From: Vitrella brassicaformis CCMP3155
Taxonomy: Eukaryota > Protista > Chromerida
NCBI GenBank assembly: GCA_001179505.1
Contig: CDMY01000410.1
Coordinates: 20,734-84,733, forward strand
DNA length: 64,000 nucleotides
Direction: 5' to 3'
The notes under the pieces are model-generated. The model had not been told where the DNA came from, ran no database searches, and saw only the letters and a list, made by a program, of their open reading frames with translations. Below are positions 11,315 to 17,800 of the stretch, in pieces. The position numbers were made by a program, and so were the translations under genes. Numbering within the stretch: the stretch's first letter is position 1; the number at the start of each line of letters is the position of its first letter.

Positions 11315-12541
11315 TCACTGTCGGCTGTACAGATGGTAAGGCACTGGGTGGCAGTCATGTGTGCCCTCGTTGGCCTCCCGCATAATTGTGTCACGGACAC
11401 GCTTCGCCAGTGGGCCCGGTTGGCCCGTGCCGATAGGCCGTCCGTCCAGCTCGACGATCGACTCCACGTGCCAGTCGCCCGACAGCATCAGCAACTCCTC
11501 CGCCTGCACTCTCACAACATACCATACACAGAGAGAGATACAGATGTTTGTCGATGTCGCTTCTGTGTCTGTGTGTGTGTGTGTGACCTGGTATACGGTG
11601 TCCAGGGGCACCTCCTGTTGCCGGACGTCCTTGAGCTCGCCACTGGCACACATGTCGCGGCAAATGTCCATGCACCGCCGCACCGTCGTGCCCGCCAGGA
11701 TGCAGTCGAATGGCGGCGTAAGGAACTCCTTGTCCTTGGTCAGCACCCCCACGCAGCACACGGCCGCCTCGGCCAGCTTGCCGTCGTAGGTGAGGATGCC
11801 ATACCGCCCTCCCTTCTCGGTGCTCTCCATCGACATGAGCGCATTAAGAAGGTAGTTGTTGCTCTTCATCGTCGCCAGCAGCTTTGGCTTCATCGGCACA
11901 CTCACAGTGAACTCCCGGATGCCCTCACCCTGACGCAAGTCGAGAGTCTCCTCGCCAGCCGAGTGGGCGGGGTGCGATCCCCACACCACCACATAGAGGG
12001 AGGCCGACTGGCACTCTGCCGGGTGCAGGGCGAAGCCGCCCACCCCCGCGCCCATCCAGTATCTCAGGTTGGCGGTTTTCTTGCCGCTGGCGGCCGCCGT
12101 CTGCTGGATGATGGAGCGAAGGTCGTCCTTGGTCCACTTGTGGGCAATGCGGGCGGTGGCTGCCGACTTGAGGAACCGGTCCAGATGGATGTCCACTCTG
12201 TAGAGGTTGCCATTGAAGAGCGAGCACGTGTCGAACACTGCGTGGCCGCGGTGCACCACTGCACGAGCAGAGAACGATGTGTGAAAAGGCCGGGCTGTGT
12301 GTGTGTGTGTGTGGTCATGGCTTGGCTTACAGTGGTCATCAATGGGAACGCTCATGAGGTTTGTGTCTGTCACGATGCCACCGATCACACTCGAGTACAT
12401 GGCATAGATCTTGGCAGATCCTCGCCTGTCCCTCATCGCCTTCAGGTAGGACGACTCATCGAAGATGGGCACAGGGACTGCAGGCATCTTTCCCGATGCT
12501 TTCCTGCCGCTGCTTTCAAGCCCATTCGCCACACCATTCAT
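11315..12541 (-). CDS. DAAT: PLP-dependent class IV aminotransferase, plant D-amino-acid transaminase / aminodeoxychorismate-lyase type (3 exons)
   Basis: VPIDDH|AVVHRGHAVFDT, HLDRFLKSA, PLP-lysine motif TMKSNNYLLN, ILAGTTVRR, DGRPIGTGQPGP; two short microsatellite-containing introns retain the frame in the ORF track. Confidence 0.9.
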   Translation of the reverse strand: MNGVANGLESSGRKASGKMPAVPVPIFDESSYLKAMRDRRGSAKIYAMYSSVIGGIVTDTNLMSVPIDDHCKPSHDHTHTHTARPFHTSFSARAVVHRGHAVFDTCSLFNGNLYRVDIHLDRFLKSAATARIAHKWTKDDLRSIIQQTAAASGKKTANLRYWMGAGVGGFALHPAECQSASLYVVVWGSHPAHSAGEETLDLRQGEGIREFTVSVPMKPKLLATMKSNNYLLNALMSMESTEKGGRYGILTYDGKLAEAAVCCVGVLTKDKEFLTPPFDCILAGTTVRRCMDICRDMCASGELKDVRQQEVPLDTVYQVTHTHTDTEATSTNICISLCVWYVVRVQAEELLMLSGDWHVESIVELDGRPIGTGQPGPLAKRVRDTIMREANEGTHDCHPVPYHLYSRQ

Positions 12542-12642: not shown

Positions 12643-13643
12643 ATGTTGTTCGGAATGGCATTCATTTCAATCTCGTACGTGCATGTGTTGCTGCTGATCT
12701 CGCCGGTGACCAATGCCTTTCGGCCTTCCATCCGCCCAGGCAGCACTCACGCGGCCTCCAGACGTCGGCAGAGGCTGCTGTCGATGAGAGAGCAAGACGG
12801 CAGCAAAGCAGGGACGTACGGCAACACACCCACTGTGCTGAAAGGCGTGGTATCAGCCCTCACCGGTGGACTGAATTCGTTTGCCGTGAGCCGAGCACAC
12901 TGCAGACGTGCAAGTTGTGGGTGTGCTGCAGTGGCTGGCTGCTGGGCGGTTTGCTGTGTGTGCAGGACGCCACTTCGTCGGGGGCAGACAAGCCGGGCCG
13001 TTCTGCCGCTGCTGTGAGTGGTGGTGAGGGCCGATCTGGCGTGTCATCGACGGCAGATCTGGTGGAGGCCATCCGAGAAGACTACACACAGCGGGCCTAC
13101 TTCCTCACAGGCACGTCACGCACACCTGAAGACCACATATTCGTATGTGCAGACGGGAGAGGCCTGCCTGTCGTCTGTGGATGTGCTTGTCTGACTGCAG
13201 GTGACATCAACGATTCGCTTTATGCGGATGAGTGCGTGTTCACCGACCCAACGATCTCCTTTAAAGGCTTGCAGACATGGTCAGTCAGGCGACACAAGTA
13301 CACACACGTGTGGACATAAAGATACCTAGCTGTGCATCGTTTGTGTTGTGGTTGGGTCAGGAAGCGCAACATCGCCTCTTTGAAGCTCTTGACGACAGAC
13401 AGAAGGCTCGACCTTCAGGTAGGGGAAGAAGGGAGGGAGAGGAGCACTGCACTGCACACACGCTGATCGACTGGCTGCTGCATGTGTGTGTGCTCATCAC
13501 ACTCATTGCAGGACATCCGTGTGTCGCCTGAGGGCTCCTCCATCCAAACCAAGTGGACTCTCTCCGTCACACTGGTCGGTCACCATCCCATCACTCACAC
13601 AAACACACTCCCCGTCCCTCTGTACGCGCGCCGCCCCCATTTC

Positions 13644-13682
<39 letters not shown>

Positions 13683-13938
13683 TGCGTGCGTCTGTGTGCA
13701 GAAGCTCCCATGGCGGCCCCTTGTGTCGATTAGCGGCGGCACCACCCACTACTTCGCGTCAGACCCCGCCGACAGCGGCCGTCTGGTGGTGACTGAGCAC
13801 GTTGAGGAGTGGGACGTGTCGGGGTGGGAGGCCTTTCTGCAGCTCTTCGGCACCAAGGGAAGGGGGAGCGACCAAAGAGATGAAGAGAACAACAGGGGCA
13901 TCATGATGGCCTTCAAGAACTTGCTCAAAGGTAGGTGA
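12643..13938 (+). CDS. DUF2358 / SnoaL-like (NTF2-fold) protein with a predicted bipartite plastid leader; probably spliced on into the CreA copy 1 exons
   Basis: Signal peptide MLFGMAFISISYVHVLLLISPVTNA-FRP plus Ser/Arg-rich transit-like stretch; motifs YFLTGDINDSLYADECVFTDPTISFKG, KWTLSVTLKLPWRP, EHVEEWDVS. Unspliced stop at 13936-13938, but a strong donor AG|GTAGGT lies at 13931. Confidence 0.8.
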
Positions 13939-14019
13939 CTACTGAGGGAGGGAGGGGGGGAGGGGAGCCGACACGTTCCATATGTGCGTGTGTATATGTG
14001 TGTGTATGTGTGTGTGTAG

Positions 14020-15304
14020 GTTTCTCCCTTCCCCCCCGTGGCTTAGTGATGCTCTCCCTGTTCACCCTGTTCACGACGGTGCCCTTCGCCGACTCGCCCC
14101 AAGTCGCACAGATCGGCACCGCACAAGCAGCTGAGGTGATGCACACGGACGGACACCTGTTCGTTCGCCCGTCTGATGTGTATATTGTATTATGTATGTT
14201 GAGTGTATTGTGGTGTGCAGAAGCGGCTGGTGGGCGAGATCGCCGGCAGTGGACTGATCTTCAAGGACACCCTCAACGTGGAGGCGTGGAGCGACCCAAA
14301 GGTCGAGGGCGTCACGATTTACATTGCCGACTTTGCAAGGCCCATCACAGAGAGGTCTGGATGCCCTCATGCCCATCCAAATGACAAATCTGCTAGTGTG
14401 TGTGTGTGTGTGTGAGTGTGTGTGTGCAGGTTTCAGAAGGACTTCTTCTCTGACCCGACATCGGTATCTCTGACATGTGCACAATCAGGGCCCGTCAAGT
14501 GAGGATGGAAAGAAAAGGGCGACGCTCATGGAAGCACATCGGCACACTCTGTCTGTCTTGTGTGTCTGACCCATCGGCCGGCCATCCCACCCTCTGTCTG
14601 TCCGTCAGGATATCGCCGTCAGCCAGTCGATCAAAGGTGGGCAGCGGACCTCATGAATATGTAATTTGTATTGCTACATTAATCCATGTGTGTCTTTGGT
14701 CTTCTTTGGTCCTTCGTCACGTCAGGACGGCGAAGAAGTCATCTCTGAGGCCAGAAGGTCCAATGGCAGAAACCCCAATAGAGATCACATCACACACCGG
14801 GGTATGTGACTGTGTGTGTGTGTATTCAGTTTGCTATTCAAGAGCATTAAGGTGAGGCGGCTGATCGACGAGAAGTCCAACAACATTATATACGTCGCAT
14901 ACAGGTGAGGTGCCCCCTTGTCAAACCCTACACACCACACCACACGGACGGGTACATGCATCTCTCGCTCTGTGTGTGTCTCTGTTGTGCTCAGCACCCG
15001 ATTCGGTGACGATGACTCTAACAAGAGTCGGTTCAAGTCGTCAATATGTGCCCTCTCCGTTAACGCACAACAGCCGGTGCGATACGCACGCACACACATG
15101 GATTGATGGATGGATGAATGCGGGCGACACCCAGCCCTGACTCAGGAGGGTCCTGTATCCATGCAATCCATGTGCGACGGTCTGTCTGTGTGCGTGTGTG
15201 TGGTGGCTGCGCTGCATGCCGTGCAGGTGGCCCCATCCCCGCAGTCAGTGGCATCATCCGCCCCAGCTGACCCCAAGAGCGGCCAGCCCAAGGGGGACTC
15301 ATGA
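14020..15304 (+). CDS. creA: CreA-family protein, copy 1 (exon chain starts at an acceptor with no obvious own first exon)
   Basis: Spliced product LNVEAWSDPKVEGVTIYIA..DPTSVSLTCAQSGPV..EEVISEARRSLLFKSIKVRRLIDEKSNNIIYVAYS resembles E. coli CreA ([53 protein letters not shown]). Confidence 0.85.
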
Positions 15305-15510
15305 ATGAGAGCACTCACTTGTCGGCCAGTGCAGCGGGCGGCGAGGCGTGTACGTGGCGGTGTACATATATAAGATACGCAGCGGAGGGAGGAGAGGATT
15401 GGTTGACAGAGTAATCTGAGCGGCCTGCCGAATGAAGCAAGAGGTTTGGAGGGAGGGTGTAGAATAGCAGCGGCAACTTGGATGAATGCATGGATGGATG
15501 GGGAGGGTCT
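14109..15510 (+). repeat. Tandem segmental duplication, unit A (CreA exons, introns and 3' flank); partner at about 16459-17800
   Basis: Near-identical exons, introns and downstream sequence, starting at cagatcggcaccgcacaagcagctgag in both copies. Confidence 0.9.
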
Positions 15511-15630
15511 GTGAGAACGGACTTTATCGACCGACTACGTGTGTGTGAGGGTGCGCGTGTGCAGGCGATGATGGCACACACCCACCCTCACACACACGCG
15601 CGCACACACACAGGCCTTCCCCCCCCCCCC

Positions 15631-15930
15631 NNNNNNNNNNNNNNNNNNNNNNNNNNNNNNNNNNNNNNNNNNNNNNNNNNNNNNNNNNNNNNNNNNNNNN
15701 NNNNNNNNNNNNNNNNNNNNNNNNNNNNNNNNNNNNNNNNNNNNNNNNNNNNNNNNNNNNNNNNNNNNNNNNNNNNNNNNNNNNNNNNNNNNNNNNNNNN
15801 NNNNNNNNNNNNNNNNNNNNNNNNNNNNNNNNNNNNNNNNNNNNNNNNNNNNNNNNNNNNNNNNNNNNNNNNNNNNNNNNNNNNNNNNNNNNNNNNNNNN
15901 NNNNNNNNNNNNNNNNNNNNNNNNNNNNNN
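15631..15930. other. Assembly gap (300 N) flanked by poly-C
   Basis: Run of N. Confidence 1.
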
Positions 15931-16341
15931 CTTCCCCCCCCCCCCTCCCCTCCTTCTCTGCGCGTGGACCCCTGTTGACTTGAGCCTGTGTGTAAGTGTG
16001 TCTGTCTGTCTGCCAGGCACTGCTGCACAGGCGCATTCACCAATTTCGCAAACCCTACGCATATTTAGGGTTTAGCTGGGCACGTCAGCCGCAGCCCGGC
16101 CCCCCTGCAATGGGAGAAAGCCTCCGCCGTAGCGATCGGCAAAATGCGAGCTTAGACTTGTGCAAGGAGAGTTCCCTTTCCGAAGGCCAATCGGCGCATA
16201 GCAAAGTCCTCAGCGATTCACCCGAGGCATGGCAATTGTCGAGGGAAATCCTTTCACACCCGAATGAGCCTCCGGGTCTTGGCGCAACGCAACACGGCCA
16301 TCTCGACCTGCACACACAGACAGGCACAGACACAGAGAGAG

Positions 16342-17588
16342 ATGTCAGCTTATTTGATCTTCTGGCTGCTCCTGGCTGGCTGCGCCTGTGGCCTTCCTGT
16401 GAGCCTCTCTGTTGCTGATCTGTGCGTTTGGTGCCGTCGGCGTCGTAACACGCACAAGCAGATCGGCACCGCACAAGCAGCTGAGGTGAGGCAATCAATG
16501 CACACGGACGGACACCTGTTCGTTCGCCCGTCTGATGTGTGTTATTGTGTGTGTTGCGTGTATTGTGGTGTGCAGAAGCGGCTGGTGGGCGAGATCGCCG
16601 GCAGTGGACTGATCTTCAAGGACACCCTGAACGTGGAGGCGTGGAGCGATCCAAAGGTCGAGGGCGTCACGATTTACATTGCCGACTTTGCAAGGCCCAT
16701 CACAGAGAGGTCTGGATGCCGAGCTCATGCCACTACAAGTGACAAAACGGTCCGTGTGTGTGTGTGAGTGTGTGTGTGCAGGATTCAGAAGGACTTCTTC
16801 TCTGACCCGACATCGGTGTCTCTGACATGTGCACAATCAGGCCCCGTCAAGTGAGGATGGAAAGAAAGGGGCGACGTTCATGGAAGCACATCGGCACACT
16901 CTGTCTGTCTTGTGTTACCCATCGGCCGGCCATCGAATCGCTTTCTGAATGTCTGTCAGGATATCGCCGTAAGCCAGTCGGTCAAAGGTCGGCAGCGGAC
17001 CTCATGAATCTGTTTGTAGAGCTACATTAATCCATGTCACGTGTCTTTGGTGTTCTTTGGTCCTTCGTCACGTCAGGAGGGTGAGGAAGTCATCTCTGAG
17101 CCGAGAAGGTCCAAAGGCAGAAACACAGAGATCACACAGCTGGGTGAAGGGGTGTGTGTGTGTGTGTGTTCAGTTTGTGCTATTCAAGAGCATCAAGGTG
17201 AGGCGGCTGATCGACGAGAAGTCCAACAACATTATATACGTCGCATACAGGTGAGGTGCCCCCTCGTCAAACCCTACACACCACACCACACGGACGAGTA
17301 CATGCATCTCCCGCTCTGTGTGTGTGTCTCTTTTGTGCTCAGCACCCGATTCGGTGACGATGACTCTAACAAGAGTCGGTTCAAGTCGTCAATATGTGCC
17401 CTCTCCGTCAACGCACAGCAGCCGGTACGCTCACACACATGGATGGATGGATGGAGGCGGGCGACACCCAATCCATGGATGTGCGACGGTCTGTGCGCGT
17501 GTGTGTGCAGGTGGCCCCATCCCCGCAGTCAGTGGCATTATCCGCCCCAGCTGACCCCAAGAGCGGCCAGCCCAAGGGGGACTCATGA
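16342..17588 (+). CDS. creA: CreA-family protein, copy 2, with its own N-terminal signal peptide
   Basis: ATG 16342 MSAYLIFWLLLAGCACGLP, probable phase-0 intron (CCT|GTGAGC..AAGCAG|ATC), then IGTAQAAE|KRLVGE... with the same CreA exons as copy 1; stop 17586-17588. Confidence 0.75.
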
Positions 17589-17800
17589 ATGAGAGCACTC
17601 ACTTGTCGGTCAGTGCAGTGGGCGGCGAGGCGTGTACGTGGCGGTGTACATATATAAGATACACATCGGAGGGAGGAGAGGATTGGTTGACAGAGTAATC
17701 TGAGTGGCCTGCCGAATGAAGCAAGTGGTTTGGAGGGAGGGTGTAGAATAGCAGCGTCGTCAACTTGGATGAATGGATGGATGGATGGATGGAGAGGGTC
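16459..17800 (+). repeat. Tandem segmental duplication, unit B (partner of about 14109-15510)
   Basis: Direct sequence comparison by eye; high identity in exons, introns and 3' flank. Confidence 0.9.

Follow-up and report, generated by a model that had tools for sequence, protein, structure and literature searches.

Gene structure, junction intron and encoded domains

We analysed a stretch of 64,000 nucleotides (nt) from Vitrella brassicaformis CCMP3155 (the window; all positions below are positions in it) and focused on the forward-strand interval 12643-15304, where the exon coordinates assemble into one nuclear gene of 14 exons encoding a model of 477 amino acids (aa). An earlier reading made from the letters alone (the sequence-only reading) had proposed that this interval encodes a DUF2358 domain fused to a CreA domain, the domain of a bacterial exported protein, through an internal linker resembling a signal peptide. 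The fusion is supported by three records that each carry both units in one open reading frame (ORF) or mRNA: the public Vitrella gene model, which was predicted with hints from RNA sequencing (RNA-seq), a complete transcript of Chromera velia, and a single unspliced exon of Nannochloropsis. The parts of the Vitrella gene are as follows.

12643-12885, + strand: exon 1, with a putative endoplasmic reticulum (ER) signal peptide, followed by a stretch resembling a transit peptide and by a helix conserved at the N-terminus
12966-13110, 13201-13279, 13361-13418, 13512-13574 and 13702-13930, + strand: exons 2-6, the DUF2358/NTF2-like domain and a C-terminal helix ending ...NLLKG
13931-14019, + strand: the junction intron, 89 nt, GTAGGT...(GT)n-TAG
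14020-14135, + strand: exon 7, the linker, with an Arg, a 17-residue uncharged hydrophobic run (GLVMLSLFTLFTTVPFA) and then DSPQVAQIGTAQA/AE (here and below, a slash in a peptide marks a predicted cut)
14221-14354, 14430-14498, 14609-14636 and 14726-14757, + strand: exons 8-11, of which exon 8 opens the CreA domain (KRLVGE)
14830-14904, 14995-15076 and 15227-15304, + strand: exons 12-14, which with exons 8-11 make up the coding sequence for the CreA domain and a low-complexity tail, up to the stop codon

Exon 6 ends with ...AAA G at position 13930 and is followed directly by GTAGGT. Retention of the intron would continue the frame as GGT AGG TGA, ending the product (...NLLKGR) at the TGA codon at 13936-13938, while splicing to the acceptor at 14019/14020 is in frame, so that exon 7 reads G-FSLPPRGLVMLSLFTLFTTVPFADSPQVAQIGTAQAAE and exon 8 then KRLVGE. 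The donor at 13930/13931, the stop codon, the 89-nt GT..AG interval and the in-frame acceptor were all found where the sequence-only reading had placed them. Its description of the intron as a typical (GT)n intron holds for length and composition, since the 13 introns of the gene span 72-150 nt, several of them end in (GT)n, and the junction intron resembles them; it does not hold for the acceptor, which is TAG at the junction and CAG at the other 12 acceptors of the gene. An in-frame ATG lies at 14049 inside exon 7, directly 5' of the hydrophobic run. The Arg that precedes the hydrophobic core is encoded 5' of this ATG and is thus present only in the fused reading. As a separate observation, intron 2 (13111-13200) has a GC donor (CAG/GCACGT...CAG), and all other introns of the gene have GT.

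A HMMER search with exon 6 alone retrieved a protein of 429 aa with 100% identity and 204 residues beyond exon 6. This protein (P0001) is CEM11152.1 (UniProt A0A0G4FDA5) of V. brassicaformis CCMP3155, which the public annotation of contig CDMY01000410.1 places at 12784-15304 of the window. Across the junction it reads ..NLLKGFSLPPRG.. (in a second excerpt, ..NLLKGFSLPPRGLVMLSLF..), and it is an exact suffix of the 477-aa model from residue 48, indicating that the public annotation uses the same junction and every downstream exon. The public Vitrella models were predicted by Augustus with strand-specific RNA-seq data as intron hints (PMC4501334). Models of this kind are supportive of the fusion but are not proof of the junction intron in particular.

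The presence of both domains in a single product, as had been predicted, was confirmed by Pfam, because CEM11152.1 passes both family cut-offs. DUF2358 (PF10184) matches residues 65-169 with 58.8 bits (cut-off 24.3; profile positions 2-106 of 113), and CreA (PF05981) matches residues 276-400 with 110.1 bits (cut-off 25; profile positions 11-129 of 131). When the exons were searched one by one, exon 3 gave a weak match to DUF2358, exons 8, 9 and 12 matched CreA in colinear order, and exon 1 had no Pfam match.

The DUF2358 domain was modelled by AlphaFold2 (AF2) with a predicted local distance difference test (pLDDT) score above 90, and a Foldseek search of the PDB with this domain returned NTF2/SnoaL-like structures (best E 4.5e-6, template modelling scores of 0.6-0.76), including ketosteroid-isomerase-like proteins, limonene epoxide hydrolase and SnoaL/SnoaL2. 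These matches agree with the earlier designation of the domain as SnoaL-like. The CreA domain is predicted to be rich in beta structure (pLDDT 80). It showed no significant structural match in the PDB (best Foldseek E 0.049; best VIA-align Z 4.1 over 48,161 chains), and a sequence search of the PDB with CreA was empty. A PsbP-like fold, suggested by a diatom homologue carrying the UniRef name 'PsbP C-terminal domain-containing protein', was dropped because it was unsupported by the structure searches. Likenesses of CreA to lipid-binding beta folds (LolA, PRELID and FABP) were weak and at noise level.

The fusion in other algae and the two-gene alternative

A search for the combined DUF2358 and CreA architecture in other algae, which the sequence-only reading had put forward as a check, found it in Chromera and in Nannochloropsis. 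The MMETSP transcript of Chromera velia (L001, 1694 nt) contains a complete ORF of 469 aa (P0002), with an in-frame stop upstream of its ATG. In the product a signal peptide is followed by DUF2358 at residues 101-204, a hydrophobic linker and CreA at residues 331-458. A Nannochloropsis/Microchloropsis cluster shows the same layout, for example the 382-aa protein EWM25897.1 of N. gaditana. On a genomic contig of Nannochloropsis type (L002), one uninterrupted frame runs from the DUF2358 motif LPWRP through the linker into the N-terminal half of CreA. The junction therefore lies inside one exon, and the fusion in Nannochloropsis needs no splicing. The Vitrella, Chromera and Nannochloropsis proteins align over their full length with 46-48% identity and have many invariant columns in both domains. 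Taken together, three independent lines (Chromera, Nannochloropsis and the conservation) argue that the fusion architecture is real and old.

When 117 relatives of similar length were compared in a profile search, both domains were detected only in Vitrella and Chromera; the Nannochloropsis cluster, with its short representative, fell outside the length window of this search. Stand-alone CreA proteins were found in many diatoms, the dinoflagellate Heterocapsa, the prasinophytes Cymbomonas and Pyramimonas, and euglenids. A feature search of the ESM Atlas returned clusters of DUF2358/SnoaL type and no fusion cluster, and a scan of genome contigs with the algal CreA profile, aimed at bacterial gene neighbourhoods, yielded no relative. 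DUF2358 also occurs as an N-terminal module elsewhere in algae, in P0015 (422 aa, with a signal peptide) together with a C-terminal glutaredoxin, and in P0115, P0121, P0135 and P0139 (the last from Prymnesium parvum) together with a PGAP1-like alpha/beta hydrolase (PF07819). In the Chromera genome, the public model of the fusion, Cvel_20429 (P0018, 598 aa), goes by the name 'Calpain catalytic domain-containing protein' and is about 150 residues longer at its N-terminus than the product of L001. L001 starts with a signal peptide of its own behind an upstream stop, and the genome model is probably over-extended through merger with a neighbouring gene.

Downstream of the fusion gene the window holds a partial duplicate of its CreA part and a gap in the assembly.

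14109-15501, + strand: duplicated block, which recurs at 16459-17788 with 89-96% identity, including the introns and the 3' flank
15621-15930, no strand: assembly gap that separates the two CreA copies, 310 nt of N with poly-C flanks
16342-17588, + strand: CreA copy 2, with its own first exon (MSAYLIFWLLLAGCACG...) and an ER-type signal peptide only

The 5' edge of the duplicated block lies inside exon 7, the last 27 nt of which (from 14109) belong to the block. Copy 2 carries an in-frame TAA in its homologue of exon 10 (~16969-16971) and a frameshift of +2 nt in its homologue of exon 12 (17174-17250), and is probably a partial duplicate in decay, for which a CreA product of 182 aa is nonetheless publicly annotated. 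Because of the run of N, it is uncertain how far apart the copies really lie and how many of them the tandem array contains.

We considered the alternative that the interval holds two adjacent Vitrella genes, which were either wrongly merged by Augustus or secondarily split. DUF2358 would then end at TGA 13936-13938, and CreA copy 1 would start at ATG 14049 with the signal peptide MLSLFTLFTTVPFA. Several observations weigh against a single fused gene and for this alternative. The stop codon comes two codons past the donor, and the junction acceptor is the atypical TAG. The ATG at 14049 adjoins the hydrophobic run, giving a plausible signal peptide (MLSLFTLF...). The gap of 110 nt between TGA 13936 and ATG 14049 would be normal for two Vitrella genes, as the median intergenic distance in this genome is 92 base pairs (PMC4501334); an argument that this spacing is too short for two genes was rejected for the same reason. 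In addition, no transcript spanning the Vitrella junction was recovered, and exact 30-mers from the end of exon 6 and from exon 7 had no match among metagenome contigs, a set that included the Chromera MMETSP transcript. The only Vitrella transcript-derived ORF that was recovered, P0034 (an MMETSP ORF of 239 aa), encodes a stand-alone CreA.

The origin of P0034 bears directly on the last point. It consists of the first exon of copy 2 (from ATG 16264; 16264-16485, with an internal 60-nt intron kept) joined to a body that is 100% of copy-1 type (14221-15304). Copies 1 and 2 share 80 identical nucleotides over the end of exon 7 and the start of exon 8, and the simplest reading is that P0034 is an assembler chimera across these 80 nt or reflects a strain difference; a misassembly near the run of N is also possible. 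P0034 gives no evidence for a start at 14049, because its 5' part is that of copy 2, located 3' of the copy-1 body. A word search of the protein collection for models of 82-260 aa containing exon 7 likewise found no stand-alone copy-1 model. Two genes would also have to be reconciled with the conserved Arg encoded upstream of 14049, with the public model that joins both parts using RNA-seq intron hints, and with the orthologous Chromera mRNA and Nannochloropsis exon, which are both fused. A recent fission would be required, and it would have to leave an in-frame GT..AG interval of the usual intron size and (GT)n composition. We therefore consider two separate genes distinctly improbable, and one fused gene remains the reading that we follow below.

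Leader, linker and predicted topology

The ATG at 12643 opens a hydrophobic signal peptide (MLFGMAFISISYVHVLLLISPVTNA/FRPS...) with the junction TNA/F, followed by a stretch rich in Ser, Arg and Pro. The Chromera transcript has a comparable leader (...LLCNG/FHSV..., junction CNG/F) with Phe after the predicted cut, and P0002 can be aligned to the Vitrella protein from GTY..TP..LK onward. The public protein CEM11152.1 begins instead at an in-frame ATG at 12784 (MREQDG; Met 48 of the longer model) and lacks the 47-residue leader. Except for an in-frame ATG at 12496, which lies only 9 nt from the annotated start of a divergent neighbour, no ATG past the intergenic region comes before the one at 12643. 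The longer form from ATG 12643 is probably the correct one, with the public N-terminus mis-annotated and without its signal peptide. The putative ER signal and transit peptide, which had been proposed for the N-terminus, agree with the TNA/F leader and its Chromera counterpart and are missing from the public model; the combination of an ER signal and a transit peptide beginning with Phe is present only if translation starts at ATG 12643. The divergent neighbour (11315-12487, - strand) is a gene for a class IV aminotransferase (PF01063), publicly annotated with 338 aa. With 155 nt between its annotated start and ATG 12643, it and the fusion gene are arranged head to head around a short common upstream region.

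To place the linker, 55 stand-alone algal CreA proteins were aligned on the motif xSG[LI][VI]FKD. At a fixed site 10 residues before xSG, Ala occupies position -1 in 38 of the 55 proteins and position -3 in 28. Upstream of this site the stand-alone proteins have an uncharged hydrophobic run (median 25 residues) that is preceded by Lys or Arg and ends about two residues before the site. This layout, typical of an export or lumen-targeting signal of the signal-peptidase type, follows long plastid leaders, one of which, from a diatom, shows an ...ANA/F junction. The three fusion proteins have an A-x-A at the same aligned position (AQA/AE in Vitrella, AEA/SS in Chromera and ARA/AS in Nannochloropsis), with an Arg and then a hydrophobic run upstream of it in all three. 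Because the A-x-A coincides with the site in stand-alone algal CreA, the linker is best read as the retained export or lumen-targeting signal of an ancestral CreA precursor, now in an internal position. The internal signal-like linker of the sequence-only reading is in this way supported. Its further claim of a hydrophobic segment ending in A-x-A is correct in that AQA is present; the AQA does not abut the segment and lies 13 residues past the uncharged run, with one Asp between.

We propose that the gene encodes one plastid-bound precursor composed of an ER signal, a transit stretch, DUF2358, the retained CreA signal and CreA, for which a stromal/lumenal topology is the most probable arrangement. 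The precursor would enter the complex plastid via the ER and then by the transit-peptide route. With DUF2358 kept on the stromal side, the hydrophobic segment would engage a thylakoid translocase, and CreA would end in the thylakoid lumen, which corresponds to the periplasm in which bacterial CreA resides. Two outcomes can be envisaged. A thylakoid processing peptidase may cut after AQA and free CreA with the N-terminus AEKRLVGE, leaving DUF2358 tethered by the signal segment as one part of a two-product polyprotein, or the segment may be kept as the single membrane anchor of a bitopic two-domain protein. We regard the cleaved polyprotein and the uncleaved bitopic protein as about equally probable.

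Some features count against this topology or make parts of it less certain. The uncharged run ends 13 residues before the A-x-A in Vitrella, 32 in Chromera and 10 in Nannochloropsis, compared with about two in the stand-alone proteins, and this longer spacing makes cleavage less certain in the fusions than in the stand-alone proteins. The layout departs from the tripartite leader of lumen proteins in complex red-type plastids, in that a DUF2358 module of about 200 residues lies between the transit-peptide-like stretch and the hydrophobic signal. In the AF2 model of CEM11152.1 the linker (residues 228-262) is non-helical with pLDDT below 50, and the whole protein is predicted as two confident domains (predicted template modelling score 0.53) with no confident packing between them. 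We also infer the plastid and lumen location from sequence features.

A different possibility is that the fusion is real and the segment anchors the protein in another membrane (ER, periplastidial membrane or plastid envelope) and is not a thylakoid signal. If translation starts at Met 12784, the segment would become an internal ER signal-anchor, and CreA would face the ER lumen, the intermembrane space or the exterior. The public model without an N-terminal signal peptide would fit this, as would copy 2 and P0034, which pair CreA with an ER-type signal peptide only. A twin-arginine motif or other lumen-specific mark is absent, and a literature search found no reported localisation for any algal CreA. 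These points are set against the signal peptide from ATG 12643 with its ...A/F junction, a leader also present in the complete Chromera transcript, and against the CreA proteins of diatoms, a dinoflagellate, prasinophytes and euglenids, whose multi-part leaders, hydrophobic stretch and A-x-A are those expected for lumen proteins. DUF2358 is, moreover, a photosynthesis-associated family, as indicated by CPL14 and by its distribution in phototrophic chrysophytes (see below). On balance we consider another membrane unlikely, and the thylakoid arrangement is preferred.

The question of whether the two domains cooperate is separate from that of topology. The fusion is shared by chromerids and eustigmatophytes and probably has a single origin, which would imply that the two domains work together across one membrane. 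In a speculative extension that is unlikely to hold, the fusion could be a 'Rosetta stone' that joins an NTF2-like small-molecule-binding domain on the stromal, cytoplasm-equivalent side and CreA on the lumenal, periplasm-equivalent side in one trans-membrane unit, and could also be a rare shared derived character tying the plastid proteome of chromerids to an ochrophyte donor resembling eustigmatophytes (a hypothesis of PMC4603697). The ligand of such a unit might be hydrophobic, for example a pigment, a quinone or a lipid.

Alternatively, two neighbouring genes may have merged neutrally, their products remaining functionally uncoupled, so that DUF2358 is merely a long spacer or carrier ahead of the CreA signal. 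The fusion of DUF2358 to several unrelated algal partners (glutaredoxin and the PGAP1-like hydrolase), the lack of confident inter-domain packing in AF2 and the separation of the two proteins in most algae are all consistent with this. A merger without consequence fits less well with an architecture that is kept in both alveolate and stramenopile algae, with two domains that are well conserved at the 46-48% identity seen over the whole alignment, and with a signal-like linker that is kept in all three genera. We consider a neutral merger doubtful, though less so than the alternatives of two genes or another membrane.

With regard to the origin of the fusion, the DUF2358 tree places Vitrella and Chromera as sisters (99/94) with Nannochloropsis as the next branch, and in the CreA tree the three fusion proteins are unresolved among non-diatom sequences. 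In approximately unbiased (AU) tests a single fusion clade was not rejected for either domain (p 0.18 and 0.21). These results are compatible with one origin common to chromerids and eustigmatophytes, which is the parsimonious and probable reading, although the trees stop short of a positive demonstration. Chromerid plastids have been proposed to derive from an ochrophyte (PMC4603697), and a single origin of the fusion, if true, would fit that proposal.

Significance and comparison with known systems

The literature searches found no paper that describes the fusion or a bacterial-type CreA in plastids, no DUF2358 paper that deals with CreA, and nothing relevant on CreA and the thylakoid lumen, PF05981 or a Vitrella polyprotein. 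The sequence-only reading had stated that the fusion is not known from any described protein. This is right for the searchable literature, in which the architecture and its implication are undescribed, and too broad for the databases, where the protein is present as 'uncharacterized' (UniProt A0A0G4FDA5; W7TIH3 for N. gaditana).

To our knowledge, neither CreA nor DUF2358 has a known function. CreA is widespread in bacteria and was found here in many plastid-bearing eukaryotes, and DUF2358 is conserved and associated with photosynthesis. The retention of the fusion in two distant algal lineages, with the CreA export signal preserved between the domains, leads to the predictions that algal CreA is a thylakoid-lumen protein and that CreA and DUF2358 act on opposite faces of one membrane. 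Such a trans-membrane unit, if true, would offer a first hint at the mechanism of CreA in bacteria and plastids, and the precursor, if it behaves as proposed, would be a new kind of thylakoid precursor, with a folded stromal domain ahead of an internal lumen-targeting signal. The patchy spread of the fusion (chromerids and eustigmatophytes, and not the diatoms or the one dinoflagellate seen) makes it a candidate marker, of the rare-genomic-change type, in the debate on whether myzozoan plastids came from an ochrophyte. Nannochloropsis is genetically tractable, and its single-exon fusion should make tests of localisation, processing and knockout straightforward.

The closest relatives of the CreA part are the stand-alone algal CreA proteins, for example those of diatoms (such as Seminavis 'Protein CreA'), Heterocapsa, Pyramimonas/Cymbomonas and Euglena. 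Their CreA domain is 45-60% identical to that of Vitrella, and they share with it the A-x-A and hydrophobic stretch 10 residues before xSG and have long plastid-type leaders. Unlike the Vitrella fusion, they have no folded domain between transit peptide and signal, and their hydrophobic run abuts the A-x-A, from which it is separated by 10-32 residues in the fusions. Bacterial CreA (PF05981; E. coli creA of the creABCD operon) has a cleavable N-terminal signal peptide and is of unknown function. The likeness to it consists in the Pfam match over nearly the full profile. The Vitrella gene differs in being eukaryotic, nuclear and rich in introns, and its signal is internal, behind the N-terminal module of about 200 residues.

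The DUF2358 part resembles the proteins of PF10184, including At1g65230, LOC_Os01g68450 and CPL14, in its Pfam score and its NTF2/SnoaL-like fold. Typical DUF2358 proteins are soluble, have 200-300 residues and stop shortly past the domain, whereas the fusion goes on into a membrane-type segment and a second domain. Chlamydomonas CPL14 is a higher-confidence candidate photosynthesis gene from a screen of acetate-requiring mutants (PMC8448359), and DUF2358 is enriched in phototrophic chrysophytes (bioRxiv 10.64898/2026.10.27.762293). A further paper (PMC9105198), on Arabidopsis At1g65230 and rice LOC_Os01g68450, likewise links the family to plastids and photosynthesis.

The nearest parallel to the proposed processing is found among thylakoid precursors. 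The PsbY polyprotein of plants is a thylakoid precursor with internal cleavable signal peptides, and bipartite lumen-targeting presequences are also known. Like these, the Vitrella product would be a nuclear-encoded precursor in which an internal hydrophobic signal with an A-x-A directs the downstream part across the thylakoid membrane. PsbY gives rise to two small membrane proteins, whereas the Vitrella precursor would combine a folded soluble stromal domain with a soluble lumenal domain, and its processing is a prediction.

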